Positions 1 through 49,411 of a DNA stretch of 64,000 nt are shown here, piece after piece (the first letter of the stretch is position 1; every line of letters begins with the position of its first letter). The DNA comes from Podarcis vaucheri (Eukaryota). Below the pieces are notes generated by a model, which did not search any database, was not told the origin of the DNA, and saw only the letters and a list, made by a program, of their open reading frames with translations. Location: assembly GCA_965113315.1 (NCBI GenBank), contig OZ220373.1, one strand, 5' to 3'. The position numbers and the translations under genes were made by a program.

Positions 1-3000
1 CCTGCTGAGATCTTCCTCCAGTAGAATCTCAAAATAGCATTCAAGAAGGCTTCACAATGTGGACATGTGTATCTGCCTCTTACGGTGACTGAAACAATGG
101 GGAAATAAAGAGCAAGTGAGATGATAGCTAGCTAGCCTTGCAATTCTGCTAACCAACTTTCAGGTGATAAAGGATGCTCCTTTGGTATTAAGGGCCCAGA
201 AAAACTCATTTGAAGATAAGCTGATCCAGTCAAAGATACTGTTGCCTTGCAATAATGCAGCCATTAAGATGCTGAAATAGCTAATTGTAGCTCCTGGGAA
301 AACCAATCAAGTTGGAAACATCGATCAAGAAGAGTTAAACAGTAAGACACTCCTTGTCTCCTAATGCTAAGGATCACCCAAGTAAATTGATTGGAATCAC
401 AACACAGAGCTCACACACAAAATTCACCACCGCAAGGCACCATGTGGGGAAATGGCTGGGGAAGCTTTTTTCAAGGCTGACACAAATCTGTCTGATAGAC
501 ACGGGCAAAGCTATTAGCTTTTCCATCTGCCTTTGGTAGCCGTCTCCCTCTGGAGACCCTGAGGCCAGGGATCAGCAAGGAGGCCTCCCGACTCCTCTCT
601 CATGCCCGGCTGGCAAGCCTGGAGAGCATGGGCTGGGTGGGCCTAATCCTGCAAGGCAAACCTGGCCGCCTTGCTTTGGGTTCGGCTTGCAAGGCTACAG
701 CAGAAGCCGGAGAATAAAAACTCACAGCTGAGTGCCAAAGGAAAGGTTGCTATGGCAGCCCTTCTCGACATGCGGCAATTCTGACACTTGCTGGGAATTC
801 TTACACGGCACCTTTTATGGCCAACGGAGGACTACGCCTGCTTCAAACGAGGCCTGGCCAACGTGCCGCTTTCTTGGCTCCATCATCCCTGGAGGCTGGC
901 AAGCAAAGATTGCAATTGCAATTTGATGACACTTCAGGACGACAGTTTCTGTCCTCGTCGCTTGCTTCCCAAACTGTTTATTTTCTAAAGCCTGATCTGC
1001 CAATAAGCAAGCTGCTAATCTCAGCGAGAGCTGAAGCAGGCGCTACGCGGCTGGATGAATCACGTTTCGGAAGGTAGAGAGCCGAATGAGAACGCTTATC
1101 AAAGGGAAAATATTCTAAACTCCAGCCAGAGCAAGCACATGCGCTAGCAAGTCACTCACCAAGCTCAGAAGGGAATAGAGACTCAGATCAAAATGTTTAT
1201 AGAAGAAAACGGGAAGCAAAGAGAAGGATGCAAAATAAACAGATGTGGAGTTGCTACAGCTGCCTGAAATCCTGGAGTGCAGCTGCCGATCAGGGCAGAC
1301 AATGCTGAGCTCAATGGGCCTGACTCCTAGGTTCCTACATCCATCTCAGTTGTTGCCAATCTCACAAGATTCATGGGAGCCATTGCAGAGGCTCAGACTG
1401 GCACAGCCTCTTGTGCCAAGGAATGCATTTGGGAATGTAAAGGGACTCAGGCATCCCAAGCCAAGCTACAGGTCCCATGACATCCTAGTTACATGGCAGT
1501 CAGAGGGGACACATGTGGCAGAAAGCAACAAAGCTTTCTGGGGGATGAATGACAAGAACAGAACACAAACTGATTGGTACAAAAAGCCAGTGATAGAACT
1601 TGTCAAGTCACTCAGCCTTGAGTAACCAATGCTGATTGCTACCAGGCTCTGTCATCCTAACCGCTTCCTCCTACGGAAGGGAGAGAAGCCACCTTGAAAG
1701 ACCTTCCCATTCTCCTACTTGCTAAGAAAGCTTATCATAAATGCCTCATCAAGATAAGCTCTATGAACAAAACTGAGGCACCCATTAATTTTAGTTAACG
1801 TTAGGAGCATTTCAACAATTGGCAGGTGACAATTTTCCTTCAGAAAGGTAAGTAAGCGGAAGGGTAAGCGAAAGTAAGGCTACGCAGAATAGCCTACTCT
1901 TTGAACCATCTAGAAGCAAAAGTCAACAGACATGGAAACCTACTCTTAGGAACAAGGTATGAAAATTCCAGTAACATTCTCCATAGATCAAGGAATAGCA
2001 GATACATTGCAGCCAGAAAAATGCGAGATTCAGAAGACATTTGACCAACTGAGTGCAAAGTGCAAACACTTGAAATGTGCTTGGAAAGTCCTCTGGGAAA
2101 ACCTGAAACTGGGGGCACAGATGCCCAAGGGGGGCAGTGGACTGGCCACTAAACATGTTTTGTGTTGGCAAGAATGAAGTTTGGTTTCTGACAGCACGGC
2201 GAGGTATTTTGTCTCTGCTCCGCACGAGGATTTAAAGCAGGTTTTTAGCCAGGCAGACATGAAGCGGCAAGAGGCATGGCAGCTTCTTTATCCAAGGGTG
2301 ACACCAGCGCCCCTGGGAGAGCTGCAGGTCGGCCGCGGCCCATGCCAGGCTCCTCAGATCTCTTTCCCTCCAGACTCCTCTGCAAGGAAATTTGAAGCAT
2401 GCCAGTTGTTTGCATGGGGAACTTGGGTAAGTGATGTCCTGGACAACGGAGGCTGCCCGCTAAAAGCTGTCCTGGTGACACCCAAAAAGAAAACCAAACC
2501 ACCTGCAAGCCTCCTGTGTCATTGATTTTATGTTTCTGAACAATCTCCATAAAAGAAATGAACTCTGGTGAATCTGTGCTAGATTGCCATTTCCAGGCAA
2601 CTGGCTGAGGAAGTTCACGCCCCTTTCCAAGACTGTGGGTCATCACTAACATGGGATTCTAACAGGGGCAGCAATGTGCACCCCTGAGGCGAAGGCTGCC
2701 TTTTGTCAAAGCAGCCCTTTCCACTCCCAGATAAACTCCAGGGCCTGGCAAACGGGGCTTCTGCAAAACCGGGACCCAAGTGCCCAGCCTGGGAATTAGA
2801 ATGGCAAAGCAAGACGTCAAACAACAGTGAATTTCAGCACTCAAATTCCTCCCTGAGGAGCGACTTTCTGTCACTCGTTCTACCTTGTCAGCTTCACAAG
2901 TGGCATCACACAACAATTATGTGAGGCAGCAAGAAGCTTTTCCTACTTCTGCCTCTCGTGCAAAGCAGAATCCCAGCCAGGAATACTCACAACCCCCAAC

Positions 3001-3718: not shown

Positions 3719-3918
3719 NNNNNNNNNNNNNNNNNNNNNNNNNNNNNNNNNNNNNNNNNNNNNNNNNNNNNNNNNNNNNNNNNNNNNNNNNNNNNNNNNN
3801 NNNNNNNNNNNNNNNNNNNNNNNNNNNNNNNNNNNNNNNNNNNNNNNNNNNNNNNNNNNNNNNNNNNNNNNNNNNNNNNNNNNNNNNNNNNNNNNNNNNN
3901 NNNNNNNNNNNNNNNNNN
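3719..3918. other. Assembly gap (200 N)
   Basis: Run of exactly 200 n. Confidence 0.99.
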
Positions 3919-15900: not shown

Positions 15901-16648
15901 TTGATTCGGGGCACATCAGTGGCCTTCCGCTGGCCAGGGCAGCATCCAAATGGCACAAGTCAACAACAACACGGGGCAGAGAGGGAACCTGCTGCCACTC
16001 TCTGCTCCGGCCTGTTCAAACTCGGCTTCTGGGTGCTCTCTGGAGTGAAATCGGGAGGCCGCCAGGAGCAGCACAGTAGTTCATGGAAGGGTCTCCTCTC
16101 CCACACACCCACAACGGGTTGGGAAAGCATCTGGAGAGAGCATTCCACAAACGGGGGGCCACGACAAAAAAGGCCCTTTCTTGTGTTGTCACCCTCCAAA
16201 CCTTTTGGGGAAAGGGAACATAGAGAAGGGCCTCAGAAGACAAACTACAGACACAGCGGAACAGTGATGTCAACGCAACACTTCCATAAATAATCCTGGT
16301 TCTTCTACACAACACAGGTAGCCAACTTGGTGCCCCCAGATGTCGCTGAGCTCCAACTTCGCCCCAATCCCAGCCCTGTTGGCTGTTGGGGCTGAGGAGA
16401 GAGTCCAACAAAATCTGGTGGGGCACAAGTTCTGCAGCCCTCTGCCGTGGGGTCAACAAATGAAGCCCACCACAGTCAACTTCAGCAAGTTGTTGGTACC
16501 AGAGAGGAACATGCTCCATTTGTGCAGTTGCCCCAGAACGGTGTCTCCCTTAGACAAGCAAAGCAACCTTCAGACAACAGTCATGGCAAGGTTTACAAGC
16601 GCAGACACAGGTGGAAGGATGGGGGGAGGGACATTTCGCGGGCCCTAC

Positions 16649-16739
16649 CTCTTCAAATTGAAGCCGCACTTTATTAATGGCTCGGATCCAGCGGGCTCTC
16701 GCAGCGGGAAGGAGGAGAAGTTCATTTTCATCAAGGTGA
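16649..16739 (-). CDS. UNC13B: UNC13B exon (91 nt) with the calmodulin-binding helix: (S)HLDENELLLLPAARARWIRAINKVRLQFEE
   Basis: ttttttgcaag|TCACCTT...GAAGAG|gtaggg; phase 2-0; Munc13 CaM site W-x3-I-x2-V (WIRAVTKVRLQ in mammalian Munc13-2). Confidence 0.93.
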
Positions 16740-17192
16740 CTTGCAAAAAAGGAAAACGAGGAAAAAATGAGTGCTGGAAACTCAAGAGCAGTCTCATGAA
16801 ACTCAACACATGAAAAGAAGCTTTTATTGTAATGGTGGGAACAAACGCTGAGAACAGTTGGCCCCAGGAGACCTGGGATGGCCAGCAAAAGACAGAGAAT
16901 GGCATGGAAAGAACAGAAAGTGTGGCCGACAGGGACTGTGGTAGAGAACCCTGTAAGGAATGCACCCCATTAGTCACTGGACGAGTGTAAAATGATGATG
17001 AGGAGGAGGAGGAGGATTTATTAGATTTATTTAATGACGTTTGCCCTACCCTTTCTGACCCTAGAAACCAGTGGACTACTCAAAACCAGCTATGGCACTA
17101 CACCCATATCCTGTTTGTCTCTCCCAAGATCAACCAGAAAAATGACCTCAAGTTCAACTCCAAGGAATCCATGGCCAATGTGCACCACCTAC

Positions 17193-17486
17193 CTGCCCGG
17201 TGTCTTCGTGGCTTCTTTGGGCTCGTCTGCTTCAGGAGGTAGTTGAGGTGTGGCATGCTCTTTCACCTTCCCCTCTCCTTCCCTGTGCACTTCCTGGGGC
17301 TCATGCTGCTCGCTAGATGGCGCAGGGCCCTCTGTCGGGTGAGGAGGAGCAGCAGGCACCCCTTCTGCGAGCTCGTCCTCATGTTCGGAGCAGGGCACAC
17401 TCCCGTGATATTGGTCCAGCTCACTCAGCTGAGAGCTTCCCTGACTGATGTTACAGGAGGAACCAAACTTACTACTGCTGGCAGGA
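17193..17486 (-). CDS. UNC13B: UNC13B exon (294 nt): (S)[27 protein letters not shown]...EATKTPG
   Basis: ctcacag|TCCTGCC...GGGCAG|gtaggt; phase 2-2; matches mammalian [28 protein letters not shown]. Confidence 0.92.
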
Positions 17487-18817
17487 CTGTGAGAGAGCAA
17501 GGCATTAGTAAGTCAAAAGGTCTTGGCAACCAGGAAACAGCACAATGCATGCACACACACAGAGAGAGAGCGCAAATCCTAACTACACCAGGCCAAAGCA
17601 TCAAATGGAAACTCTAGCCAAGCAAATGTCTCTTGCACATTGCAGCCACTGTTCTCAGTCGCCCGCCACTTCCAGGTTTGTGTTTGCAATTTTTGTGCTG
17701 GGCCTAAGCCTCTGGACCCTATTGATATATCAATCAGGAACTGATAGCATCATCTGCTGCGCATCCTGTAAGTTGTTCACAGGCCATAAGAAAATTAAGA
17801 ATGGCAGCAAAAGTTTTGTGCGCATTGAACCTCTAAACTGCTAAGCTCAACACCTTCTCACAACAACGTTTGCCCCTAGCATGTCAACTGCACGTGGATT
17901 CTGGGACATGAGGGTTTCATCTTCACTCCCATTTCATTAACACATTCTTAAGTTTCTCCAGCAGCTGAGAATGGATCCTGTTGTAGCTGCCGTTTAGAAA
18001 AATCAGCCCTGTCTTCCAGCACAACATGGGCCCATTGCTGTTGCTGCTTGGGAGTGACTGATTATTATAAGGTTGGAGTTACTGCACCAGGAGCTGTTAA
18101 TTCAACAAGACACCCACACTCTCTCTCTCTCTCCATTGTGGAATTCTAAGAGGGAAGGGGCACAAATGCTTCTGGGCCGCTATTGAAGTGCCGCCTGGCT
18201 TTTGGCAGCCCACATAGGCAGAGACAGCTGCAAGAGGACCCAAGGCAGCTACACTCTGAAAATCCCATCTATTCCTTGGAAAACAGGCTGGGCAGAAAGG
18301 AAAATGCTTGAAGCAGGATCCCTGCTGGGCCAGTTGTCTAGAGATGGCGGGTGAGGAGGGCAGATTTAGCAATGATTTTAGTGACTAGCAGTTCTGTAAC
18401 TAGGGATGGGCAGCAAGAACACCGGCCCCAATCATCCCCCGGACAGGGGTAAACAGGGAGCAAAAGTCACCTAATATACTGATAGCTGTAACATGAAATC
18501 ACTGCAATTCTCTTCAATAGGGAATAATTAAGCATGTTTTTGAGATACGGTAAACTAGAAAACCAGTTATCAGCTTGCTTGGAGACCTAATGGGGACACC
18601 AAGGATCTCCTCATTGGCTCCAGATGCCTGCAGCCTAACGCAGAAAAGCACATTCAGCTAATGCCGCTGAATACAGCTGGTAAAAGTAGAGAAAAACGGA
18701 ATCATGTTAGCTGGGCAGTAACAGCTTCCGAGCAGCAAGAACTGGATGTTTCGGCATTAGTACCTTTAATAGTCCACGGCCATGTTTAACTTGTCCTGGT
18801 GGGAGGGGGGAGGTTTT

Positions 18818-19045
18818 AATCACAGAATCTTAGCAAGGCAGAGTTGGAAGGGACCCCCAGGGGTCATCCAGCCCAACCCCCTAAATGCAGGAATCACAGC
18901 TCAAGAATCCATGACAGATGGCCAGGCAACCTCTGCTTAGAAACCTCCAAGAAAGGAGAGTCCACCAACTCCCCAGGGAGTCTGTTCAACAGCTGCTACT
19001 GTCAGAAAGCTTTCGTCTGCTGTTTCATCGGAATCCCCTTCTGGG
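18818..19045 (-). mobile_element. CR1 LINE 3'-end fragment
   Basis: acagaatc...gagttggaagggaccccc...catccagcccaacccc, same family as 46718 and 62674. Confidence 0.7.
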
Positions 19046-19566
19046 TGTAGAAAAGTTATGCTGCAGGGGACTGAACTGCAACCACTGAAACAGCTTTTGC
19101 TGCCATCTGGGTCTCTCTCCCATCTTAAAACGTGGATGCCTTGTATGTTGTCTAACTAAGCTTCCTGCAAACCAAGAGAGCCCCCGATTTCCTTCCTCCC
19201 ACCATGTCATCTAGAGGTACAAGTCATTTTCTCTCACACACAATTAGGCTACGGAAGGTTAATGAAACTAATACTCAAAGCAGCCCACTCACAAGGACAC
19301 AGCACAAACGGAGAGCAAAGGGGAAGAGTCACTGCAGCCTTTTGGAACACAGGAAACCAGAAGTTGAGGAGGAGAAGGGCAGGAGAGGCTCTGGGTGGGC
19401 AGTCTAGCAACTAGCGTCCACAACTCTACCTACCACTGGGTACTACTAATGCCAAACACAGCCTAGAGGAGTCTGATCTACGAGGTCAGGCATCTACCGT
19501 TACGGCACTTGCATTATAAATGGCTCACAAGTTGGCACCATTTATCATGCTGTTTTGGCTACTGGC

Positions 19567-22500
19567 CTTTTCTTCCTGAGTGGCTCAGGGCTACTCTGCT
19601 CCGCTGGCTGCAGTCCAGTAGCAAGTGTTTCCGTTTCTGGACAAGGGACACTTTCCTTCTGCTCTGCTTCATCCTGAACCTGCGTGGCGCCTTCTGCTGG
19701 TTCCTCCAAGGGGAGCCCAGGAGGCTCACTGGAAATGGCGCTTGGCTCATCTTCCGTTTCTCTGGAGACCTCAAGCTCCAGCTCCTTGTTGGGCACAACC
19801 GGGATGTCAGGCGTGGGGCCATCAAAGCCTTCGTTGCTCTTGCTGTCGGGCTGCTTAGAAGAAAGGTCTGAATCAGCAGCACTGTCAGCTGGCTGCTCAG
19901 AGGCAGAGAGGTTGGGGCTCCCATCAGCACCGGTCACATCCACTGCTTGTTCCTCGGCTTTTGAGACAGCTTCTGGTGCCTTCAAATCCAGTTTGGATGA
20001 AGCCATTGGGGCCACCTCCTGTTTGGAGGAAGCTTTTGGTGTTGGCACATCTGGTTCCTTCTTGAGACCCGCCTCCTTGGCATCTTTCTGCCACGGAAAT
20101 GAGAAGTCCAGCTTCTTTCCAAACACAGCACCCGGAGTGGCCTCTACTTTACCTGCTTTCTCATCACTTCCTCCGCCAAACAGACTTGAGGAAAACTTGT
20201 TGAAGCTGGACACCAGGCCTGGCTCAGGCGCAGGCTTGCTTGCTGAAGGCGGCTGTGCAGAGAAGAAGGAGCCAAATGGCTTGCTGCTGTCTGCAGAAGA
20301 CATGAAGCCGAATTTGGGCAAAGTGGGCATGCTTGGAATTTCAAACATGGGCTTGGTGCTGCTGGTCTCTGCAGGAGCACTGGCTGGCTTGCTCTGGCCA
20401 GCCAAACTGCTTTTCAAGGGAGCAGCTTCTGGGGCTGCTGCGCTGACGGTTAGAGGCTCTTTCTGCTCAGGAGGAAGATCAGGTTTTATTTCAGGGACCT
20501 TTTCCATATCCTGACGGGGCAAGTCACGGGCCTCATCTGCAGCAGCTTTGGGTTCCATCTCCAGGGTCCCAAACGTGTCTGGTGGGCAAATATCAACATC
20601 TGCCTCATTCTTTATAGTTACTTCTTCAGTGGTTAGTGAAGTATCCGTCAGTTCTGGCAGTTTCAGGTGTTCATCTTCCTCACCAACCTTGGGTTCCAGC
20701 TCACATGTACCGCCCAAATCCATTTGGCCAATGTCTGTTTCTCCTGCCGGGCTCAATTGCTCTTCAACAGCAGGGACAGCATCATTTTCTGAGGGCTCCA
20801 CAGGCACTTCACTCTTCTCCTGCAGCACCACCGTCTCAACTGCATCCTGTCCCTCTTGACTACATGGGGCAGCCTTCCCTGCTTCATCAGATGCCAGTAA
20901 GTTTGTGTCCAGCTGCACCACTTCAGGGCCCTGACCCCTACTTGAGTCTAAAGTTTCTGAAGCATTAAGGGAGGGTTCCAGACCATGTCCAGGTCTTCCA
21001 CTGCTTTCAGCTTCCAATTCTGCCGTACATTCTTTTCCCAAACTCTCATCTGCTAAAGCAGAAGGGGCGTCTTGTTTCAAGTCACTGCTAGCTTCTTTCT
21101 CTGTAGGTTCAGCCCTAGAGGTTTGGTCCGGTTGTTTCAAAACGCTGCCAGCATTTGTCCCTAAAAGTTCATCCCTAGAGGCTTTATCTTCTTTTGCGAG
21201 ACCTTTACCAGGAACTGGGCCCACGGCCTCCTTTGCCCTGGAGCTCATTTCCTGGGGTTTTGAAGTGCCTGCGGTCTTCCCTGCAGGCTTTGAAAGGGTC
21301 TCGTCTGTTGCTCCTTTAAAAATGCCAAAGAGATCACTTGTAAATGCTGGAGGAGGCCCAGTGGGCAGGGAGGAAAGGCCGAAAAACGAAGTGCTCTTCT
21401 TTTGGGCACTAGGAGCTGCTGGAGTCTGAGGCTGGGAAAAGAAGCCAGATAATGTTTTGGTTGGTTTCATCTTTGTCATGAAGCTGGAAAACATTTCAAC
21501 TGAGGAATCTAGAACGGATTTGTCAGCCTCAGGCTCTTTAGGTTTCTCCTGCAGGTGAGGTGTTGCTGCTGCCATTTGAGGGAGAGGCCTCTGGCCCCGA
21601 GTCTGCTGCTCTCCGGCAGTATTTGGGGTCCTGTCAGGTTGCTTGGGCTCCGGGGGCTTGACTTCAGGGAGGCTTGGTTTTTCTTCAGGTACAACCTCCT
21701 GCGAAAGGTCTCCAGGAGCAGGCGATGGCTCAAGAGCCACAGGAGTCTCATTACAAACTGGACCGGGCTCTGCCTTTTCAGAAGTCTCGTTCCCACCTGA
21801 CGGAACAAATTCCTTCTCAGAGGGCACCACAATACCGTCACTCTTTTCTGCCTTGTCTTGCAGCTGCTCCTCTGGTTGTGGAATCTCCGGAAGGGAAGGT
21901 GGCATGTCTTCCTGCAGCGTAGGGACCTGAGAGCCAGGATCAGGACAGACTGAGTGGTCTTCCCTATCTGTACCATCATCAGGAGGTTTACTGGCCACAA
22001 AAGGTATCTCTACCTCATTTTTCGCTTCTGAAGCACTTGCCACAGCATGCTCAGCCGCAGGAGTTTTTAGCTCACTTGCCTTCTGCTCCAGGCCATCAGC
22101 CTCCTGCTTTCCAAGTACTGCTTCTACAACACCAGCCGCTGCCTCTTTATCCTTCAAGCCCTGCTGTCTGGCAAGTCCAATGCCAGAGTCAACAGAAACA
22201 CACTGCTTCATAGATGGCTTTGCGTCTGCTTGCTGTTGAGGCGGCCTTCCCAGGTTGCTTGCCTGCTGCTGAGGTGGCTTTGCAATAGTCCCCTTTTCAG
22301 GAGCAGCTGCCGGTGGCTTGTCATCCAGGAAGGAGGGCAGGTTGAAAAAGCTGAAGCTGGAGCTGCTCTGAGGCACGTTCTTCTTTGCGGTGGGCCCTCC
22401 GGAAAAGAAAGAAGGCATCTTGAACAGACCCTCTGCTTCCGGGGGCTTGGCGTTAGGAGCTGCTGGAGCTGGGGCAGGGGCTTTCTCTGGGGCACCGAAG

Positions 22501-25500
22501 AAGGAGGAGAAGATGCTCTTGCCAGCCGGCTGCGGTCCCTGCAGAGGCTTCGAAGGTGCTGCCTGCGACAAGCCAAAAGGCAGGCTGAACCCAGAATCCC
22601 TGGGTGGCTGGCTGCCTTTTCCTGGCTGAGTTTTACCAGGTATGGCTCCTGCACGGCCTTGCGGTCCCGCTGCAACAGCTGGTCCGTGGCCATGCTGCCC
22701 TGGAGAGCGATTTGCCTGGTCCATTCGAGGGCCTGCCTGCATGGGAGGCTTGGGTTCTGCATTCCCTGCGATGGGGATGTCCTCCTTCTTCACTTGAGCA
22801 GCTTCCTTGCCTACTTTCCCATGCTGTACTTCCTTAGGGACTGTGGGCTTCTGGGCAGCTTCCCCACGAGCCTGCTCCACGGGGATTCGAGGGGCAGGAG
22901 TGCTGCTCTTACTTGGCTCTCTGCTACGCTGGTCCGCGTTGTCATTCGGTTTCAGGGAGCTGTGGGTTCCACTCTTTGGCGGAGCAGGGGCTGCATCAAC
23001 TTTGAAAAGATCTCCTATGGAACCAAAGAATGATGAAATGCCTGGGGGCTCCACTTTCTCCTGAGGCATTTTCTTCTCGGCTTCGTTTTTCGTCAGATTT
23101 GGTTGGGGTGCTGGTGGTGGCTGTGGGGCTTTGTTGACCTGCGTTTTAAAGAAATCAAAGAACCCGGGGCCTTGACTTTTATTGGGGGCTGCAGGTGTGG
23201 AGGAGTCTTCTCCCAGGCTGAGAATCTTGAGAGCACTTTTAAACAACGTGCCCTCAGCCTCCGTGGGCGCTTGGCTGGGGGCTGGCTGGGTTTTCTTGGG
23301 CTCATCCTCACCCACTTTGGGTTTTTGTTGACTTGGGAGGGGAGCAGGCTTCACACTTTTATCCAGCTGACTGGTCTTGCTGTCCAGGGGACCCTGGCTT
23401 AGCTGAGAGGAAGACCTCACCAGCTGAGGCCTTTTCTGAGAAATCACTGGCTTTTCATCCCTAACAGACTTAACTAATCTGCCTCTCTCTTTTCTCTCTT
23501 GTTCATGCTCAGTGTGCTGCTGGTTTTGCACATCCTCTCCTGTTTTCCTGGGTGGCGAAGCTGGAAGAGCATCGTTTTTGTGTCCCAACACCACCGGTTC
23601 TCCTTTCTTCACAGCCGTGTCTTCCACTGTCTCATGCACTTCCATACCCTTACCCATCAGGCCACCCAAAGCAGAGAATAAAGATGCAACTTTATTCAGA
23701 GGTGGCTTTTTATCTTCTTCAGTGGTTTTGACTTCTGTAACACTCTGAGATGCCGATGAAGGCTCAGGCTTAGCAGAAGACTGGAATATATGGAAACCAA
23801 ACCGTCTTGACTGTCCACTTTCGGAAACTGTCACAGCAGGGGTCCTGTCCGGATGTTTGGGTAGAGCATCATCTTTTAGCCTCCCACTGGAAGCCACCCT
23901 GGAGTGAACTCTAAGGTCAAGGGTCAGGGGAGGCTCTTCTGAGTGCCACTCCATGTCATTCTCAGGCCTGAAGTCTACTTTGAGTTTTTGAAGTTTGTAC
24001 CCTGAAAAGTCTAAAGGCTGCTCTCTCTGGTAATAAATGGACTCCTCAAACATCTGCGAAAAGGTCTCTAAATTCATGTTCATAAGTTGATCACTTCTCT
24101 GCAGAGCTACAGACAAATCAAGTGGTTTGTTTACAGAGTAATTATCCAATTGCTCCTCTTCAGCAAACCAGAATAACTCGTCTTCATTACCAAGAGGCAC
24201 TTTGAAACCGCAAACGGCAATCATGTCATCTTCCAAGACAGTGCTCTGCAAAATGCTCTGCGGATAATTATAATCCCAGTAGTCTGGGTAGGTGTAAGTG
24301 TCAGGAGTGCAAATGTAGACATACTGCCCAGTGGGGTCGGTGAGCAGGGAATAAACAAACTGGCCGTCCCTGTACATGTAATATCCACAATCGCCATCTT
24401 CCGACGGCCACCACACGCCCTTCTCAAGCAGCACCAGCCAGTCCTGGTACTCCTGGCTATAAGATGAATAGACAAAACTGCCCTCCAGGCTCAAGGACTC
24501 CTGATCAATTAAGGTCCACATATTGCCATCACATGCCGATGAATAGCTCAAGTCCATGGGCATCTCTTCCAAAATATAGCTGCAGTCATCAAATGGAGGA
24601 AGATTTCCATTCAGAGAATGCGTTGCCCACATTTCAGTTTCTTCTAGACCTAAATCTTGTAAGTCTAACTGATCAAACGATTCGTGTGACATGACACTGA
24701 AATCCATGCTCAGGGCATCAAAATTGGCATTTGACCTCCAATCCACGACATTGGCATTGCCATCTTTTTTACACAAGTTCACTACGGCATCACTGGAGTC
24801 TGGCCATTCCAGAAACTCAGCCAGTGGGACAGAATTCTGCTGCAAGACGTAGTAAACGGGCAAGGAAACCTGGTGGGCATTGAGAGAAAATGCTCCTGCA
24901 TCATATTCCCAGTCAAAGCTAGAGTGGCTCCTTGTTTCCTCAAGAGTAAGATGCTGCTCTGAGTGGCCATACAATTTAGCATTCAGCAAAGAGGAATTGA
25001 GAAATTCATTTGACCTTTCGTTGAGAACTGCTTGATAAATATTGGAATCCATAGGTTGTCTATAAAGAGTCGGCTGCCCCGATAAGTCTTGTATCTTTGG
25101 CTGTGAGCTTAAAGCATTCTGAGAGGGGGGGTGCCAAGGGACGGGACCATGTCCGTTGTCCCTTTTGCTCAGTTCTGGGTGAGGAAAATGACCATTCGCC
25201 TTCGCAGTCTCAGTCACTGCCTCCTCCGCTTTTTCTTTTGGCCTCTGCATGAAGTTCTTTATGAAGCTGCCCGTCTCCGGTTTCCCCCCAGTGCTTTCTT
25301 GGGGACCAGGAGTCACATGTGAGCCAGCAGACTTGTCACCAGAACTAGTCTCTTCGCTCCTCTCAAAAAACTTCATTATGCCCAGAGAGCCTGGTTTTGC
25401 CTTATCTGGCATACTTTCGGTCAGGTTTTCACTTGAAGCAAACCTAAATAATCCGGAAAGTAAGCCAGCTGATCTGCTCTTCTGGCTGTCCGTTTCATTT

Positions 25501-28368
25501 TTAGCATTTGACTCTTCCGTGTGGGTTATGTGGTCTGAAGACGCCTGCCGGAAGAGGCCCGAGAGCAACCCCTGCCCTGGCTGTGGGGGCTTCTTCGGAG
25601 TATCATCCATTACCTGGTCCTCTCTGATTCCACCAGGAACCACTGGCTGTCCTGCTGTGGTATTTAAGTCAGGTTCTTTTGTGGGGGCTGTCAGCTCCCC
25701 CCTGCATTTGGAATCTTTGTGGTCCAGAGCACCCATGCGTTTGGTATCATGATCCATGTGTGCAATTTTTGAAGTGCCTGAGGCACCCTGGTCTTTATCT
25801 CCATGTTTTAGTGCACCCAGACCATCTTCTTTACCGGTTTCTTTCTTCCTCGTTGGCTCCTCTTTTCTCTGCGGTGCCTCAGGAACTGCCTGAGACTTTG
25901 ACGAGTCCATTTTGGCAGCTTCCACGTTGCTGCTTTTGTGACCCGCTTCAGCATTTGGTGGCTTGCCACTAAAACTTGGTGGGGCAGTTTGATCTTTTGA
26001 AGCTGTCAGGTTTTCCACAGAAGCAGCTTTCAAGAAGGAAGTGAAAATTCCTGGCTTCTCTTTGATGTCCTGCGGTGGTTTGTCTGAAAAGCCAAAACCG
26101 CTCAAAAAGGGAATCTGGAGCTTACCGGTGAAAGGGAAGTTGGGTTCGCTGCTTGCGGAGCTTGTTTTCCTGACATCATCTTCAGAACGGTGACTTTTCC
26201 CCAAGCCCGGTGGTGGCTCCTTTGGCACAGTTTCGGTAGCAGAAGAAGGGAGCAGCAACTGGCTGAAGGATTTCTTAAGTGGGCTGAAAAAGCTCTCAGA
26301 TGGTTCCCCCTGCTCCAACGGCAGAGCGTTACCAGTCTCCTTCTTGGCTTCACTTGGCTTGTTTTCTGGCACTTTCCCTGCAGGTTGTGGATTTCTTGGC
26401 ATGTCTGGGTGTTCTTTAACAACTTTATCTGGCTGACTTGTGGCCTGCGGCGGCACATCAGAAGCCTTCTGTGGCCCACTTGGCTGCTTGGGAACAGCCA
26501 GACTCTCAAAACTGGCTTTCAAGCTAAAAGAACTAACGGAGCTCGACAGCTTGCCAAAGATGGAGGAGACGGGGCCGCTGCTTGCGCTCGCTTCTGCCTC
26601 GCTCTTGCTCGTTTCGGGAGGCGCAACGTTGGTGGGTTTTGTCGCGTTGCCTTCAGCTTCCTTCCCACCTGCCTTGGCTTCAGAAGCACTGGCATGCGTG
26701 GCTTCCACCTTCACAGCCTCCTCCTGTTTTGCAGTCTCTTTTTTCGGTGCTTCCTTTTCGGAGAAGATTTTCAAAGGGTTGAAGATGCCCAAGACGGAGT
26801 TCACGACTGAGCTGGGGTCCAGAGAAGGGGGCGGAGCAGCGTTTGCTGAAGCATCGTGGACACTTGGAGGAGCCTTGTCGTCTCCCGCCGTCTTTTCTGG
26901 GATGCTGGCCTTGGCATCACCGGCTTCTCGCTCACGGCTACTCTGGGTCACAGAAGGGGCAGTTGCCGTGGGCAACCTGGCATCCGATTTGCTCTCTGCT
27001 TTCAGTTCCGGAGAGGCACCCTCAGACTTAGGCTTACTTGAAAACAGACTTATGATGCCTCCCTCGGGTTGACCAGGGGCTTCAGGTTTCTCTGGTGTGG
27101 GAGATACAAGTTTTTCAACTGAGGCTGTTAAGTGCTTTGTTCCTGAGCCCACTTTTTCGGTGAAAGAACTAAATAAGGAGCTGACCGTGTTCTTCACCCC
27201 AGACAAGTCTGGCAGTGCCTCTGTTATGCCTTTGCTGCCCTCGCTCTCCTCTGCGGCAGAAGCGGCTGGCTTTGCCTGTTCCAAAGGGGCACTTTCCTCC
27301 GCCAGCTTATCAGCCCCGGCCAGTTTGGGAGAGGCACCATCGCTTGCATTTTTGCTCGCAGGAAGGGTTTCAAATTTGCTAATCTCCTCCTCTTTTTCAG
27401 CTAAGTATTCAGACACAGTTTCAACTAAGCACTGCAGTTCATCCATTGTGTCCACATATTCTTCCGTTGGCTCTTCAACAGGAGAGAGGGTCAAGTCTTG
27501 CTTAAGAAAGCCGTGCTTTCCTCCTCTCATCCTATGTGAGTTTTTGTCCCTTGGTAACAGGGATATGGCACTTCCAGTATGGGCGTCAGTAAGGTCTCCA
27601 ACATGGCGAACACTGGATTCACGCCATGCTTGGGAAAGTATTGCTATTTCTTCCATTTCATCATCATCATCTGAAACTGGGGAGTACAGGAGTATGCTGG
27701 ATGAACAGCTGCCAAACTCTTTAAGGGCACCCAATGGCACAAAAGAGTGAGCTGGCTGTTCTGAATGGATCTCATTTTCACCATCAAAATGGACTGATCC
27801 TGAGTCATGCTTTGCGCGTTGGTTAGCGGACAACTTGCCACTCTTGACTAGAAGGCCATTCTTGTATGGACGCAGAACTGGATATTCCGGTAACTGTTCT
27901 TCACTTTCAATGGGGCTGCTGCCCCATTTCTCAGTTTCATCATAATCAGGATATAGGTTATGTTCAGTTCTTGCTTTAATGCTGCCTGATGAAAATCTCC
28001 GGTTACCACTGCTTTGCAGTACAGTTCGCTCGCATTCTTCAAAATTGTTATATCTCAGCTTCTTCTTTCTTCTCCTGTCTATTGTGTCATATTCCTCTGG
28101 ATAGCAAGGAACATCGGGATGTCCTGATTCTGGGCAAGGCTTCCGTGAGTATCTTGCTCTTTCAGGATGGCCAAAGTTCTCCCTTTTTGAGAGCCTCGGG
28201 CTCCTTCGTCCCTGTGAACTTCTAGTCCTGTGACTTTTTTCTAAAAAATCTTCTATTAACTGTTTGCCTAATTCCTCATAGTTCTCTTCACACTCTTCCT
28301 GTTCTTGGCCAACTTCGTAATCAAATGGAATGATCCTGACTTTCCCATTGCTAACTAAAGATCCTGGT
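19567..28368 (-). CDS. UNC13B: Giant alternative coding exon of UNC13B (8,802 nt, 2,934 codons; 3' boundary tentative)
   Basis: Stop-free 2,992-aa ORF 19545..28523. An ~80-nt polypyrimidine tract ending ...acgtatcag|ACCAGG gives a phase-2 entry matching the upstream exon. The proposed donor AAAAG|gccagt at 19567 is phase 2 and matches the downstream exon. Confidence 0.85.
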
Positions 28369-28814
28369 CTGATACGTGTGGAGAGGGAAAATATAAGAAG
28401 GACAGAAGGGCAAAGAAAAAAAGGAAAGAGCAGGAGGGGTGAAAAAAGAGCTTTAAACACAAAACTTGCAAAGGAGCATTTCATAAAGACCAAATGATAT
28501 CGTGAATCACATGCAGAAAGCATATTAAAATATCATAACAACGAACCCATTTATTAACACGAAATGTTAGGAATCTCTCTTTTACTATTATTGCAGCTAA
28601 ATAGTAGGGTTGTAAGGGTAGGAGAGCATGAAACATGTATACCACTGTTATGTATACTATAAAGTGATATATGGTATGTTATTTATAAGCTTCTGTTAAG
28701 AACAGGAATTGCAAATTAAAAATGTCAATAAGCAGCTACCTAAAATGTTACAAGTCACTTTCTGGAGCGTCTCAACGGAGTTTATCCCACAGAAAGCAAT
28801 GATGGCCACCAACT

Positions 28815-29685: not shown

Positions 29686-29811
29686 CTATCAGACACCTCT
29701 AGTGAGTGCCGGCTCTCTAATGACAGCTGGCGGCTTGTCATTTGACTTGACTGTGATGCAGATTCCAGGTCAGTTCGGCCACTCACAGTGGAGTCTAAGC
29801 TATGGCGCCTT
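29686..29811 (-). CDS. UNC13B: Candidate 126-nt cassette exon: (R)RRHSLDSTVSGRTDLESASQSSQMTSRQLSLESRHSLEVSD
   Basis: Pyrimidine-rich acceptor ...ccttgcctttttgaag|, donor GATAG|gtgggt; open in phase 2-2 as the flanking exons require. Confidence 0.55.
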
Positions 29812-30363: not shown

Positions 30364-30586
30364 CTGATGGCTGCTCGTTCGTGGTAATCCAAATCATAGC
30401 CATGCAGGGACTCCCCACAGCACTCTCGGGGGACCCCCTGCTGCTGCAGGCGGGAAGCCACGGGGAACTGGTGCACCGAAGCATTGGGCTGCGAGGTGGT
30501 GTGGTACTGGGGAGGAATGCTGTTGCTGGTCTCACTGCGGTAGTCGCTGTCTCGGTCATCCACAGCACTATCGTGGTCTTCAAAAG
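30364..30586 (-). CDS. UNC13B: UNC13B exon (223 nt): [40 protein letters not shown]...[11 protein letters not shown]
   Basis: cttctag|CTTTTGAAG...GCCATCAG|gtaggt; phase 1-2; contains the conserved Munc13-1/2 motif [18 protein letters not shown]. Confidence 0.95.
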
Positions 30587-33285
30587 CTAGAAGACAGGAG
30601 AGGGTTGAGCAGCGTCTCCCAGGCCAAGATCCGGACACTTCAGACAAAAGCACCTTTCAAGCAAGCTTGTTTGTCTTACGAGAGAAAGTAAAGGGCAGCC
30701 TAAAGGAAGAGCTTCTTGGCTTCCCAGGGAAGCTGCTCACTGGAGATGTGTCTGCCTAAGCATCACGAATGAGGCCTATGAAGAGCTGTTGTTTCTACAT
30801 CTCCTCCCAAAGTACATCATACCATAAAGGCTGGCTTTATTATGGGTGGAAGAGAAGAGGAGAATCTATTTATTCACCTCGTTTAACAGCTGGTGAAATA
30901 GAACAGAGCAGAACCATTTTCTTAGCCATCTTTTTTACTGGCTTCCTTCCTCTCTCTCTGCAGGGTTGCAGGCAGCACTGCCCTGCTTCTCCCCTCTCTT
31001 CCTAGACCTCTTCCAAGGAGCCCTCAGCTAAGCAGCACCTCTCCAACCAGGAATGGGGAGGAAACATCAGTGGAAAGGACAGTCGTGGCACATTTGGGAG
31101 CCAGGAAGGAGAAAGCATATGTGATGGTGCATTGAGAAATACCTCGTGTGCACAATTGCTAACATTTCCATTTAGGAGTATTTTAAAAGGTGGCCACTGA
31201 AACAAACAACAAGTAAACATCGCCCAAGGGGAAAGGAAGGGCACTAAACCTCTAGCTTGAATGGCAGCTCCGTCCCTCCCAGGAAGTTGCCCAGGGCTGG
31301 GGGGCAGAGGGAAGGGGAGCAGGAACAAACTGGCAGGATGTGCTGGCAGGTTGTTCTTGCGAGTGCTCATGCTCTGCCTAGGGTGATCACAGCTTAAGTA
31401 TTTCTTTTTTGGTTGACAAAGTGGGAATGGTAAGGAGAACCGGCAACTTTTGCGGAGCTCAAAGGAGGGACTGCAGGAAAGTCACTACGCAACATTGACC
31501 CACAAGCTACAACCACCACCGAGCAACGGAGAGAGGACAATCTAACAGAAGCACTGTCTGAAGAGGTCAGATCTGAGCCAGGATGCCGGACGCCGTCTTC
31601 CAGCATCCGCATGGTATAGTTGTCAGCTCCTCTCCCTCACTTGAATTTGTGGTCTGGAGAGTCCAGGCAAAACTGTCCCCCAGAAACGGAACAGGACCCG
31701 CTTCTTACAACCCTTTGGGTTCCAGACTCTCTTCCATTTATTCAACATAAGGGCTAGTTTCTACAGAAACAAGCTGCTCCTTGCCCCTCGCCCAGCCAGC
31801 CCGCTCCTCTCCCCGATACCAAGTGGAATTGCAACATGCATCTTAATAAGGAAGAAAAAACAGAATATGAAGCATCCTTAGCCAAGAACAACTTCAAACA
31901 GGCTTTCAACTCCTCTGGAGTAATTTGATTGTCCATGCTGGAAATGACACCATCTCCCGCTTTTTAAGCTGCCTTGGGTGGAAGTATTCTTGCTCATCTG
32001 CTAGGGGAAAGGGCTAATTTCAGTGTACTAAATTTTCTGGATTCACATGAAGGTGCTTATCTTGGCTGTTTGGTGGAATATAAATATAAATGAAGAGCAA
32101 TTATCAATTTCTCTCTCTTTCTTCAAAGGAGAGACGAAGTCCCTTTCAAAAGTACATCTGTATCTGAGCAGGCAACCAATGTGGCAGAACAAAGTACCCC
32201 TTGAGGACGTTTCTTGATGTGCAAAGGAAGGGGCAGTATCCCAAAATGAGACCACCACCTGAAAGCCCAAAATGTTCCTGGTTTTGCTCCCTGTTGTGCT
32301 TGAGCAGGTTTGTGAGACTGAGAGAGAAGCTGCAGCAGGTGAGCCATGGCTCTCCACCTTGATTTCCTGGTGAGAGTGAGCCTAAGGGTCTTTGTCCGAG
32401 TGCTCAGTTACAGCTCTAGAACATCATCCCAGGGGAACGTCCTCCTCCTGAGCCCATTGCCACACGGGAATGAACAAGATCTCCTGCTCATTCTCATGGG
32501 GTCCCATGGGAGTTATTTTAAAAGGACTGTGCCTTCAGCAGGTTTTCTAGGAGGCCATCTCCATCATTTGATGTGTCACCTCAAGGGGGTGATTTTCACT
32601 GCTAACCCTGATCTGATTTAAAGTGTGGCTTCCTGAAGAAGGCTCTTTTAGCATGGTGGCATCTGCCATGCCATGTGGAGCAAGCCCTCTGCCCCTGGAA
32701 ACAAGGCCTGTGTCAATAATGTTAATTCTTTCCGTGTCTTTTTCCCCAGCTAAGCATTTTCAGATGAGCGGTACTGGCCCCTGAGCAACCACAGAATTGA
32801 TATTTTTTTTTTTATTAGGAGGCCATGTTGTTTTATTACGTATTGTATGGAGGTTTTCTTTTTTAATTCTTGAGTATACTGTTTTGGGATTTTAAAACAG
32901 TAAACTAATATATAAGTTTACTTTTAAAAAACCACTAGTATGGGTATTTTAATTACATAAGCAAATGTTTGAGAATAGGTGAAAACACATCACCATAATT
33001 GCAGGGAGAGGAGGTGGAGGGAGGCCTCACCAAGAAGGGCCCCCCTGTTCCAAGAAAAAGAATCTAATGTCTGTGGTCTTGGGGGGGGGGGTCTCCTACA
33101 TGGGAGGGAGGTGCAGGTGTCATAAAGAGCATTTCAGGCACTACTCTGAGGGGCTGGAGGAGGAGGAGGAGGAGGAGCGGTGGAGGGCAGTGAATGAGAA
33201 ACTCCATGCAGAGACCAACTGCATTTTCATTCCTCAGACAAGGCAGAGTGACAACAACTTCCCCAACCAGCTCTGGGTGTGCTGC

Positions 33286-34420: not shown

Positions 34421-36569
34421 GGCTTGTGAGAATTCTATGGCCAGACATTTACGTCTTCTCCCACTGCTTCTCTCCAAAGCAAGGGAAGGCTGCCTTTCAT
34501 ATGGAAAAGGAGACTGAAAACCTAATTACTCCCCCATTAGCCTTTAAGAAAGGTTTTCTTTTTAAAAAAAATCCCTCCTGAAATCCAGGCAACTGAATGT
34601 CAAGGTGGGATGAGTGGGAGAGCTGCAGTGTGAATGTGAGTTTTAAGCGTCTTCTCTTCCACAAGAGAACAGCAGGCATTCAAGATGAGTGCGACTCCAC
34701 GCCAAAAGCCTTGTCTCAACGTGGCAGCCCACAAAAGTAGATCCTGTCAAAAAAGATAAGAGTTTCCCCAGAAATAAAGGGCTTGCCCATTCCTCATCTG
34801 ATGTTTGTTGGGAAAACAGAAGAAGCCTGCCCTGTACCTTCCCGCTGCTGCTGCTGCTTGGGAGGAAGGAAGGCTGCTCTACAGCGAAAGAGGCTACTGA
34901 ACTGGCTGAGGGACATTCTGCACATGTCCCCCATTGTATCGAGGAAACACTAGCTGGGAGAAATCTCCAGCAGCTCCAGGGAACCAACGCTAATCTCACA
35001 GCACACCCAAATGCTTTGCTTCCCTGCTGCTCCCAGGGGAGATGAACAGAGTGGCTTTGAACCCCACGCTTGGCAAGGGAGAGGGGTCTGTTGCTGCCAG
35101 AGAGGGAGATGGGGGCATCCTCTCCCATCACGGAACTGCTGGGGCTCCGCTGAGAGGTCTGGCAGGAAGCCCGCCTTCTCTCCCGCGAGCAGGGGCACTT
35201 CTGATCCCAGAGGGTGGAAGAGAAGGGCAGAAACAAAAGTGAAGGTGCAGATGGGCACACCCTGAGTTAAAGCCTTGTGCCAAAGAGACCCACTGCCCAA
35301 GCCTCGTGCCACCTGGGACCCCCAAGATGCACACACCTGGCAAGGGGGGGGGGTTCAACTCTACAAGCCTCTTGCTTTGAGATCACCAGTTGACAAAAAC
35401 CTGTTAGGGAATTAATCCTCCTCCTCAACTCAGCAGAGCAGGTTCCTCAGGAAACTCCCAAAGGGCCAACGGGCCGTATTAATGGGGAGACCGGTGCCAC
35501 AGAGTGTAGAGGAGTGAGGCGCAGGCTCCTCAGCACCGGCAAATGTCACTGCTCACAGGGCTTCGCATCAGAGTGGCCTCCACAATCTGCCCACGGCACC
35601 GAGTTAATCAGCCCAGAGGGCGAGGTTGGGATTATGTGATCTCGAGGGGGGGGGGAGACTCCTCGACTGCGAGATTGTTATTCTTTGTGAAAACCTCTCA
35701 CTGCTCTGCAAGGTATACGGGTAGGAGAAGAGCATGCCTGTCACTTTGGTGAATGCCACACACCGATCTGACTTTCAAAAGAGCAAGCGGGAGGCAGGGA
35801 AGGCTGAGCCTGCTGGCCTCCTCCCCCCACCCTGGCATTTGAAGACCCATCTGGTGGGAAAGGCACTCAGAGGAAGGTGGCAGGGCAAGAAAGCAAAGCT
35901 TCCTCCCCCCAATCCAGGCCCCAGGCACTCTTCATGGTGCAACTGGGCAGCATTGGGAAACTGAAGCTTCACCAAAAAATCGCAACATGGACAGGGGTCT
36001 TATCTATCTGAAAAAGGGGCAGAGGGGTCTAGAGTTAATGAGGAGGGGCACATGACAAACAGAAGGAGAACTGCACACAAGCACTGGGCACATGAAGGAG
36101 GACCAGGGCTGAGTCCGGTTCCCCCGGGGTGGAGAGCGGCAGTCTTCCTGATCCTGAGAAACAGGGCACACTCTAGACCTTTCCTGATGGATCAGGAGCC
36201 TGTCCTATTATGCTCAATAGCCATTTTTGTTTTTCGCAATTGGGAACAAAAGCGACAGAGCAGGTTCTGCTTCTCAAACCCATGGCAGTTGCTGTGTTGC
36301 TGGTTGTTGGGGGTGCCCCATGGCCCTCAAAGGCACCAGGCAAGAGAAAATCCCTATTCTAAGGTACCATTCATTAGTTCACATTGCAAGGGAGAGGCAT
36401 GGTAGGATGGGCACACACAATAACGGAATTCAACAAAGTAAAAAATAGCAGAAGGTCGATTGCATTTCACTCCTCTGCATGAATACCCGAGATATCCTCA
36501 GCCTGGAGCATGGGGAAGCAATTCTGAACCGGAGAACTAGAAAGAAATTATTATTAAAGTGTTACATAC

Positions 36570-36605
36570 TCTGCTCTTCTCCCCATCCGAAATAACTCCA
36601 GCTGC
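36570..36605 (-). CDS. UNC13B: 36-nt frame-preserving cassette exon: (C)SWSYFGWGEEQ(T)
   Basis: tgcatgcag|GCAGCTGGAGTTATTTCGGATGGGGAGAAGAGCAGA|gtatgt; phase 1-1; resembles the recalled Munc13-1 CNWNYFGWGEQ and rodent Munc13-2 HWTYLGWGEHQT segments. Confidence 0.85.
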
Positions 36606-49070: not shown

Positions 49071-49411
49071 CTAAAGGGGGAAATGAGTAGAGATGAGGAA
49101 TGCAGTAAAACGATTTTCAGCAGACAGGGGCTATCTCATTTAGGGGCACTTTTCTCCTCTTCCATAAAACCAAACACTCCCCTCTCCCAAAGAAACATTT
49201 GCCCTGTTTCATGCCAAAGCTTCCGGGCACCTGCTCCAGGGTCCCCCTTGGTTGCTACAAAGCCCCAAACACTTTCCCCCAAGTGTTTGCAAGCCGAGTT
49301 TGATTCCTCCTGTGCAGCCCTGCCTAGATTTGGAACAGGACTGGAAAAGAAAGCAGGAACTGGGGCTCTGGTAGTGCCAAACTTTGTTGTACTGTTTTTA
49401 TACTGTTTTAA

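Follow-up and report, generated by a model that had tools for sequence, protein, structure and literature searches.

A giant, deeply conserved coding exon of lizard UNC13B with an ambiguous 3' end and a predicted multivalent arm

Munc13 proteins are central synaptic vesicle-priming factors, and their N-termini decide the place and mode of anchoring. In the UNC13B gene of the lizard Podarcis vaucheri, an 8.8-kb reading frame free of stop codons lies between two ordinary coding exons, within the region that encodes such an N-terminus. This raises the questions whether the frame is an exon of UNC13B, how its 3' end is processed, and what the encoded segment (hereafter the arm) might do. The analysis was performed on a window of 64,000 nucleotides (nt) from contig OZ220373.1 of NCBI GenBank assembly GCA_965113315.1; all positions refer to this whole stretch, and (-) indicates its minus strand, on which UNC13B lies. 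We propose, with a probability of about one half, that the frame is an ancient, alternatively used giant coding exon of UNC13B with a 3' end of two possible fates, and that its arm is a multivalent tether or scaffold.

The open reading frame (ORF) on the minus strand extends over 19545..28523 (2,992 codons), and the giant exon within it occupies 19567..28368 (-), corresponding to 8,802 nt or 3 x 2,934 codons in phase 2-2. The exon frame contains no stop, against 222 and 100 in the two alternative frames of that strand, and the probability of such a frame by chance is about 1e-61. A reading of the letters without any database search (the sequence-only reading) had described 2,934 stop-free codons of phase 2-2 between two UNC13B exons, and this description held in full: both flanking exons were recognised and the phase was confirmed at both flanks. 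The acceptor is a strong, textbook 3' splice site (28369..28450, (-)), consisting of a polypyrimidine tract of about 80 nt followed by cag/ACCAGG, with the AG at 28370-28369 (here and below a slash within a sequence marks an exon boundary). On the upstream side are the C2A exon at about 54.9-55.1 kb (-) and a linker exon that ends in ...HERAAI (30364..30587, upper boundary approximate, (-)) with the canonical donor AG/GTAGGT at 30364. On the downstream side are an exon beginning with (S)PASSS (17193..17486, (-)), which RNA contigs described below splice to 16739 at a depth of 51-321, and the exon of the calmodulin-binding site (ARARWIRAINKVRLQFEE; 16648..16739, (-)). The giant exon is flanked by same-strand UNC13B exons on both sides, C2A and linker on one and the ARARWIRAINKVRL side on the other, all in compatible phases, and it is located within the ub-type N-terminus, between C2A and the calmodulin-site exon of ubMunc13-2. 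Its identification as the bMunc13-2-specific N-terminus was rejected by position alone, the giant exon being upstream of the ubMunc13-2 calmodulin-site exon; bMunc13-2 has a promoter and an N-terminus of its own (PMC5379939).

Orthologues of the exon are widespread. A word search with exon residues 1090-1530 as the query identified 291 proteins from lizards, snakes, turtles, birds, Xenopus, axolotl, marsupials, and placentals including non-human primates, many of which bear PF00168, PF00130, and PF06292 and are named unc-13 homolog B. The best match was 'protein unc-13 homolog B isoform X1' of Zootoca vivipara, with 95% identity in the query region and 91% along the entire exon. Over this entire length, identity to the window was 46-58% in other sauropsids, 43% in the rattlesnake, and 30-34% in mammals and amphibians. 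A HMMER scan of 1.84 billion representatives with the core region gave 65 clusters at 50% identity; every cluster looked up by name was UNC13B or unc13bb, and no UNC13A or UNC13C paralogue of the exon was found among the 65. The fish matches included Megalobrama (5,754 aa), Spinachia (4,892 aa), Gadus (4,877 aa), Scleropages (4,438 aa), bowfin, sturgeon, and the catshark Scyliorhinus torazame. Since orthologues are present in catshark and teleosts, the exon is gnathostome-wide on these matches and predates the split between cartilaginous and bony vertebrates; its conservation, which the sequence-only reading had considered probable, spans catshark, teleosts, and mammals. In more than 100 species, ranging from shark to primates, the ORF is uninterrupted. 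Compared with distant orthologues, 25 conserved islands were recognised, together accounting for 632 of 2,933 residues (about 22%).

Predicted long isoforms are already present in RefSeq, Ensembl, and UniProt, in line with the earlier reading, which had mentioned an annotated very long isoform of human UNC13B; such isoforms were found in many species, primates included. The models fall into three forms. Form (a), the cassette form, is about 4,300-4,550 aa in length (4,900-5,750 aa for teleost unc13bb) and contains C2, C1, and MUN, with the junction ...TNK/SPTSSSRYGSS in mammals; examples are Aquila chrysaetos X10 (4,539 aa) and Pongo 'UNC13B isoform 2' (4,343 aa). Form (b), C2A plus arm, is about 3,000-3,350 aa in length with C2 only, lacking C1, C2B, and MUN, and is read through the donor to a nearby stop. 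Form (c), the exon alone, is represented by 'uncharacterized protein LOC...' entries of 2,500-2,900 aa in turtles, frogs, axolotl, marsupials, and some birds. The full-text literature search found no paper describing the exon or a giant Munc13-2 isoform, and no functional study of either. The existence of the exon is already in public annotation, and what is new here is its functional anatomy and the ambiguity of its 3' end. Apart from these forms, four UNC13B models of the frog Leptodactylus fuscus (P0124 and P0218-P0220), each about 3,000 aa long, have their first residue within the giant exon and the core at residues of about 90-390, and they reach the normal Munc13 C-terminus, which hints at an internal start combined with use of the 3' donor.

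The many form (c) models of 2,500-2,900 aa without UNC13B domains would be expected if the frame were an independent, nested single-exon gene with its own promoter. The start of the exon argues otherwise. In the lizard its first 237 or so residues contain no Met, the first being at about aa 238, yet this segment holds islands at aa 94-103 and 162-180 (DTIDRRRKKK and LRPYKNGLLVKSG) that are conserved down to fish, and therefore translation must enter from upstream exons. Furthermore, the ORF starts exactly at a strong acceptor in the right phase, and the models of the closest relative as well as a partial catshark model join the arm to C2A; Zootoca X1 (3,208 aa) joins ...HERAAI/RPGSLVSNGK exactly at the proposed acceptor. 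A nested gene is thus very improbable.

The 3' boundary is of a different kind. The donor (19560..19570, (-)) reads AAAAG/GCCAGTA, with the GC at 19566-19565; in longer form the boundary is AAAAG/GCCAGTAGCC, a weak, non-canonical GC donor with C at +3. A weak internal 5' splice site is one mark of composite terminal exons, where it competes with polyadenylation in the intron. In the exon frame it encodes K-R-P-V, and K-R/P-V is kept from catshark to mammals, although the preceding 130 or so residues evolve fast and are among the least conserved of the giant exon. When the donor is read through, translation continues into the tail (R)PVAKTA followed by TGA (19547-19545) and, directly after it, TAA (19542..19566, (-)), so that the stop is seven codons past the donor; this tail is the C-terminus of the C2A-plus-arm product. 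The form (b) models end in the same manner, each with a stop after the last residue: Zootoca has PVAQTA, Pogona PVARMAS, Paroedura PVAGAA, about 25 birds LVTNEA, one turtle PVTKAA, axolotl PVTVEA, and sturgeon and bowfin PVAA. A short tail and stop are also present in gecko and skink models, and RefSeq models ending past the donor exist for Zootoca, Pogona, Paroedura, Crotalus, zebra finch, Pseudopipra, and one macaque.

A further element, GCATGATAAATGG, is located 17-29 nt past the GC donor (19538..19550, (-)) and contains GCAUG and the AAUAAA-like GAUAAA. Shifted by one base, it reads ATG ATA AAT GG, encoding M-I-N-G, and the read-through tails of mammals and Xenopus contain I-I-N-G (...IING[FI]...). 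Because these tails match the lizard letters in another frame, GCAT[G/A]ATAAATGG at 19538-19550 is suspected to be a conserved RNA element across frames rather than a conserved peptide. Polyadenylation immediately behind the stop was considered as well and is unsupported in the lizard, where only GATAAA is present and RNA contigs run on.

No run recorded as RNA of P. vaucheri contained the stretch. RNA data were available from four runs of a close relative, 96-97% identical to the window, in the form of transcriptome contig sets of 77-141 Mb in which spliced contigs are present. Contigs were placed on positions 16600-22500, covering only the 3' end of the giant exon. The dominant contig, with a depth of 213, 321, 51, and 63 in the four runs, joined 16739 to 17193, and its loose end at 17489 spelled ...DLDYHERGAI. 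This contig is the exon-skipped mRNA, and its junction is the one predicted earlier from the letters for skipping, ...RAAI/S/PASSS. The giant exon was covered without gaps at a depth of about 20 and 15 in the two best runs. Its GC donor was crossed unspliced by RNA contigs, and the following 2-kb intron was as deeply covered as the exon itself, as far as the next acceptor, whereas the next intron (16740-17192) had no coverage. The joint of 19567 to 17486, proposed as a check in the sequence-only reading, was present in none of the four contig sets, from which rare forms are dropped. The pattern is compatible with a transcript that retains, 'detains' or reads through the GC-donor intron, and also with unspliced precursor RNA; cassette splicing gets no support from these RNA samples. 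Within the same intron, a segment at 18767-19160 was present at an RNA depth of 1,100-3,000 in all four runs with many differing loose ends, and looks like a transcribed interspersed repeat.

Comparison with the same relative identified a single insertion or deletion (indel) in the exon, an in-frame one of 3 nt, against indels of 1, 2, 3, and 10 nt in the intron. Frameshifts or stops in close relatives, named beforehand as the finding that would speak against the exon, did not appear: this 3-nt indel is the only one, and the frame is open in the more than 100 species mentioned above. Nucleotide divergence in the 3' 2.9 kb (about the last third of the exon) was 3.0-3.9%, nearly the same as in the intron (3.6%), in keeping with a constraint on this part that acts mostly on frame and islands. 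Such near-intronic divergence, together with an RNA depth equal to that of the neighbouring intron, could also be given by a chance or decaying ORF without function, transcribed only as intron. The 2,934 codons free of stops, where the other frames have 100-222 of them, the frame kept open from shark to primates with its 25 islands, and the 3-nt length of the only exon indel all stand against this reading, which is effectively refuted by conservation.

Three accounts of the 3' end are then to be weighed. In one, both ends of the exon are always spliced, the sole product is a full Munc13-2 of about 4,500 aa or 490 kDa, and the read-through models and unspliced contigs represent precursor or artefact. 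The phase 2-2, compatible with the next exon, the donor-like KR/PV conserved from shark to mammals, and dozens of full-length models (birds, reptiles, mammals, and teleosts) agree with this account, and so does the intron contig that runs into the acceptor of the next exon, as a precursor would. Against it, the next intron is without precursor signal even though the intron after the giant exon is at full exon depth; the 19567 to 17486 joint is absent from the contigs of the four runs, the donor is a weak GC site, and the short tail and stop are conserved in fish, axolotl, and sauropsids. We consider this account a serious one, yet unlikely to be the whole explanation. The designation of the element as a cassette exon in the sequence-only reading accordingly stands in part: the skipped form, the phase compatibility, and the full-length models speak for it, and the weak GC donor, the stop seven codons on, and the unspliced contigs against it.

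In the second account, the protein always ends past the donor and consists of C2A and arm, forming a RIM-binding scaffold or a competitor of Munc13 for RIM, and the full-length models are the result of computational stitching. RefSeq models do end there in several species, the closest relative included, the donor is read through in the RNA contigs, and the early stop is conserved in many lineages. On the other hand, sauropsids share no conserved tail peptide with mammals or Xenopus: another frame is used and, in mammals, the stop is at varying positions, and therefore the conservation looks like that of an RNA signal such as a splice donor. In addition, the lizard has no canonical poly(A) signal nearby, the contigs do not end in the intron, and the phase compatibility with the next exon would be a one-in-three coincidence. 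Exclusive use as a terminal exon is distinctly unlikely.

The third account, which we prefer, is alternative use of the exon with both fates at its 3' end. Several points weigh against it. The dominant RNA contig is the skipped mRNA where inclusion is claimed, and the joint that one of the two fates requires is missing from the contig sets. The equal depth of exon and intron, 5-9% of that of the canonical exons, could be that of unspliced precursor. The intron contig reaches the acceptor of the next exon, and therefore the contigs show no poly(A) end for the other fate; after the stop only GATAAA adjoins, the first hexamer being an ATTAAA about 750 nt on (ATTAAA sites at 18820 and 18770). The exon divergence in the 3' 2.9 kb is close to that of the intron. 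Finally, all gene models of long isoforms are computational and disagree on the 3' end.

The arm has a predicted mass of 315 kDa, an isoelectric point of 4.95, and a net charge of -135, and is rich in S, P, E, A, and K. Disorder-promoting residues account for 63% of it. No Pfam family matched the arm at E<=1, a PDB sequence search gave nothing below E 0.1, and the ESM Atlas gave no usable match. The conserved centre of the arm is an aromatic-rich core at aa 1266-1468 (23964..24572, (-)). AlphaFold2 (AF2) modelling of a 406-aa cut around this core (aa 1095-1500) gave a mean predicted local distance difference test score (pLDDT) of 30.9, by which a large well-folded core domain was ruled out. 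Composition and model together suggest that the arm is largely disordered, as had been supposed from its sequence. A shorter cut of 181 residues (aa 1290-1470), modelled with fish and shark rows, reached a pLDDT of 55.8 and a predicted template modelling score (pTM) of 0.51. It includes a predicted four-strand beta-meander with a helix, with pLDDT 66-76 over model residues 21-60, corresponding to aa of about 1305-1355 (24303-24455, (-)). No fold relatives were found for this model by Foldseek (best E 0.76) or by the wide search with VIA-align (best Z 3.1).

About 19 of the islands are short amphipathic motifs, with Phe, Leu or Met at positions i, i+3/4, and i+7 and Ser, Gly or Thr between them; by eye, about 28 such motifs are present in all. 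Examples are VSSLFSSFTEKVGSG, GLLSGLFRFASSENL, ISSFFGSIGDLFKV, VASLFSALGGLMGKG, and LVSSFNKFSSSLFGGG. They are arranged in two fields on either side of the core. The N-terminal field (aa 384-1045; 25233..27218, (-)) contains about 11 Phe/Leu plus Ser/Gly motifs separated by divergent P/E/K/A-rich spacers, and the C-terminal field (aa 1521-2765; 20073..23807, (-)) about 17 further Phe-rich amphipathic or FG-like motifs, also with divergent spacers. The pattern Phi-[STGA]2-Phi-Phi (Phi, hydrophobic residue) occurred 18 times in the arm of the window against 1.3 in shuffled sequences (z 14.7), and 11-16 times in bird, turtle, frog, axolotl, and mammal arms (z 4.5-9.3). S[LFI]F occurred 13 times (1.5 in shuffles) and FG 15 times (6.9 in shuffles). 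Criteria for segments of the amphipathic lipid packing sensor (ALPS) type were set for this analysis as a helix-compatible stretch of at least 18 residues with a high hydrophobic moment, an S/T/G-rich polar face, and few charges. Seven segments of the arm satisfied them, against 0.7-1.1 in shuffles, and about 20 more amphipathic motifs, with fewer than 18 residues, are too short to qualify. Within the N-terminal field, two near-identical copies of GLLSGLFR(Q/F)ASS(D/E), located 34 residues apart at aa 933-980 (25430-25571, (-)), point to a local duplication; both are kept in the vertebrate consensus.

The second class of motif consists of PxDLS-type sites, the type recognised by CtBP and RIBEYE. 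Two sites are canonical, PMDLS at aa 1270-1274 (24546..24560, (-)) and PLDLS at aa 1415-1419 (24111..24125, (-)), the latter with P-x-D invariant in a 31-row alignment. The PxDLS-like site PLDFS at aa 1451-1455 (24003..24017, (-)), 36 residues after PLDLS, is invariant in tetrapods. P-[LVIM]-D-L-[ST] matched twice (PMDLS and PLDLS) against 0.0 in shuffles, with PLDFS and TLDLR as near-matches. The first site is P[MIV]DLS in the lizard, bird, turtle, frog, mammal, catshark, sturgeon, and bowfin rows and LMDLS in axolotl; teleosts have PMDLT, PVDLT or nothing. The PMDLS/PLDLS/PLDFS trio as a whole is found from catshark to mammals; in catshark as in lizard, its sites are 143-145 and 36 residues apart.

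The best conserved island of all is an acidic amphipathic helix at exon aa 292-335 (LSPVEEPTEEYVDTMDELQCLVETVSEYLAEKEEEISKF; 27363..27494, (-)). Its consensus, LSPVEEPs[ED]E[YF][VI]D[TPA]MDELQCLVE[TS]VSEYLAEKEEEI, is near-invariant from teleosts to mammals. The motif with a pair of phenylalanines within an acidic tract (FFAT), which binds VAP, has the core EFFDAxE after an acidic tract (PMC8306308). Compared with this core by eye, the start of the helix, E-Y-V-D-T-M-D after VEEPTEE, matches at positions 1, 2, and 4, is conservative at positions 5 and 7, and has Val or Ile at position 3; teleosts through mammals keep the FFAT-like core in the form E[YF][VI]D[TPA]MD.

From these features the following course of events may be proposed for an exon of alternative use with two fates. 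The exon would normally be skipped in most tissues. Upon inclusion, translation would enter from the C2A and linker exons through the strong acceptor at 28368. If the weak GC donor at 19567 is spliced to 17486, a Munc13-2 of about 4,500 aa (about 490 kDa) would be formed, in which a 315-kDa insert is placed between the RIM-binding C2A and the priming core of CaM (calmodulin) site, C1, C2B, MUN, and C2C. If the donor is left unused, translation would stop seven codons on (...RPVAKTA), giving a protein of about 3,200 aa that carries C2A and arm without the priming module. The two fates are inferred from the signals and models described above, and the partners and the tether function of the arm from its motifs. 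The 19-28 or so ALPS-like amphipathic helices might bind small curved vesicles, or each other, in a weak and multivalent manner, and the PxDLS trio in the aromatic core might dock CtBP1 or the RIBEYE B-domain, by analogy with Piccolino, in which multiple PXDLS motifs bind and bundle the RIBEYE B-domain (bioRxiv 10.64898/2026.04.28.721253). The near-invariant acidic helix with its FFAT-like start would be the third class of preserved island. C2A could anchor the arm to RIM, an anchoring established for N-termini of the ubMunc13-2 type (PMC5379939), and the arm could then keep vesicles, and perhaps ribbon or CtBP material as well, close to release sites. A tether comparable to giant ankyrin or Piccolo, suggested in the sequence-only reading, stays a hypothesis, now specified more closely by the conserved motif classes. 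Two properties of the motifs are unfavourable to this proposal: relative to classical ALPS the amphipathic motifs are short, with Pro interrupting many of them, and two of the four PxDLS-like sites (PLDFS and TLDLR) are non-canonical.

Ribbon synapses are a natural place to look for such a protein, because ubMunc13-2 is the only Munc13 present at photoreceptor ribbons (PMC7660176). A more specific version of the proposal, by analogy, is that the arm is a vesicle-capturing tether at ribbon-type or other high-throughput release sites, with C2A on RIM, the PxDLS trio on RIBEYE or CtBP1, and the ALPS-like fields catching vesicles by curvature, while the GC donor would be a regulated switch between a priming-competent giant and a priming-incompetent scaffold. 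This combination is a long shot. If true, the priming-incompetent form could be part of the reason that photoreceptor ribbon transmission, measured as priming, is hardly changed when Munc13-2 is lost.

Several other features of the window were recorded. A small Ser-rich alternative exon, RR.SLDSTVSGRTDLESASQSSQMTSRQLSLESRHSLEVSD, is located upstream of the giant exon at 29686..29811 (start 29811 or 29808, (-)), is 123 or 126 nt in length and of phase 2-2, and has the donor AG/GTGGGT. Models from Phrynosoma, gecko, bird, and snake have it ahead of the giant exon, and it is also included in a standard 1,599-aa frog isoform; the lizard seems to be one codon short in it (RRHS versus RRYDS). A short open stretch at about 36565-36600 (-), ...SWSYFGWGEEQ, matches a segment of Zootoca X1 just before FEDHDSAV and is probably another small alternative UNC13B exon. 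On the plus strand, an ORF at 49384-49815 has a retrotransposon-type tail (...RRIDAFELWCWRRLLRVPWTARRSN...DRSAWRALVHGVTKSRTRLND), and looks like a fragment of a Bov-B/RTE long interspersed nuclear element, typical of squamate introns. A run of 200 N at 3719-3918 represents an assembly gap or masked sequence.

Among known systems, the nearest are the predicted long UNC13B isoforms themselves, which contain the same orthologous exon at the same gene position; they are models without described function and have three conflicting 3' ends. As to the amphipathic motifs, ALPS proteins such as ArfGAP1, GMAP-210, and synapsin carry bulky Phe, Leu, and Met on one helix face and Ser, Thr, and Gly on the other, with few charges, and the motifs of the arm are alike in this respect. 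In GMAP-210, an ALPS motif at the end of a long tether catches small vesicles. The motifs of the arm differ from those of ALPS proteins in being mostly 10-20 residues in length, in often ending at Pro or carrying Lys, and in being present in about 20-28 copies instead of one or two. Because FG-like dipeptides are enriched in the arm, cohesive 'sticker' behaviour may be an alternative to ALPS-like membrane binding. With the PXDLS array of Piccolino/Piccolo the arm shares a cluster of PxDLS-type sites with fixed spacers in a giant active-zone protein, binding being predicted in the case of UNC13B. In the UNC13B arm, spacers of 36 and about 32 residues separate the last three sites, against about 25 and 45 in Piccolino, and Piccolino has seven sites in a plain linker, whereas the arm has two canonical sites plus PLDFS and TLDLR in an aromatic-rich core.

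The giant exons of ankyrin-B and ankyrin-G (440- and 480-kDa isoforms; for giant ankyrin-B, PMC7401806) are alike in that one very large alternative exon adds a long extended region to a neuronal scaffold. No sequence relationship to them was detected by the Pfam and PDB searches, and the UNC13B exon differs in that it predates bony vertebrates and in its ambiguous 3' end. The alternative N-termini of bMunc13-2 and Munc13-3 (PMC5379939) share with the arm the strategy of placing N-terminal anchoring modules before a constant priming core, but the giant exon is internal to the ub-type N-terminus and is not an alternative first exon. The exon belongs, as an uncharacterised case, to the giant alternative exons by which neuronal scaffold proteins gain disordered arms. 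Knock-outs, antibodies, and constructs for 'ubMunc13-2' ignore two possible products, the form of about 490 kDa and the priming-less form of C2A plus arm, which could compete for RIM. An insert of 2,900 residues has been kept open since before the split of sharks and bony vertebrates, and its motif classes point to vesicle membranes, CtBP/RIBEYE, and possibly VAP; if so, the arm would make a third type of N-terminus for Munc13-2, one not yet studied, and would be a candidate for a giant tether of the active zone beside Piccolo, Bassoon, and the giant ankyrins.

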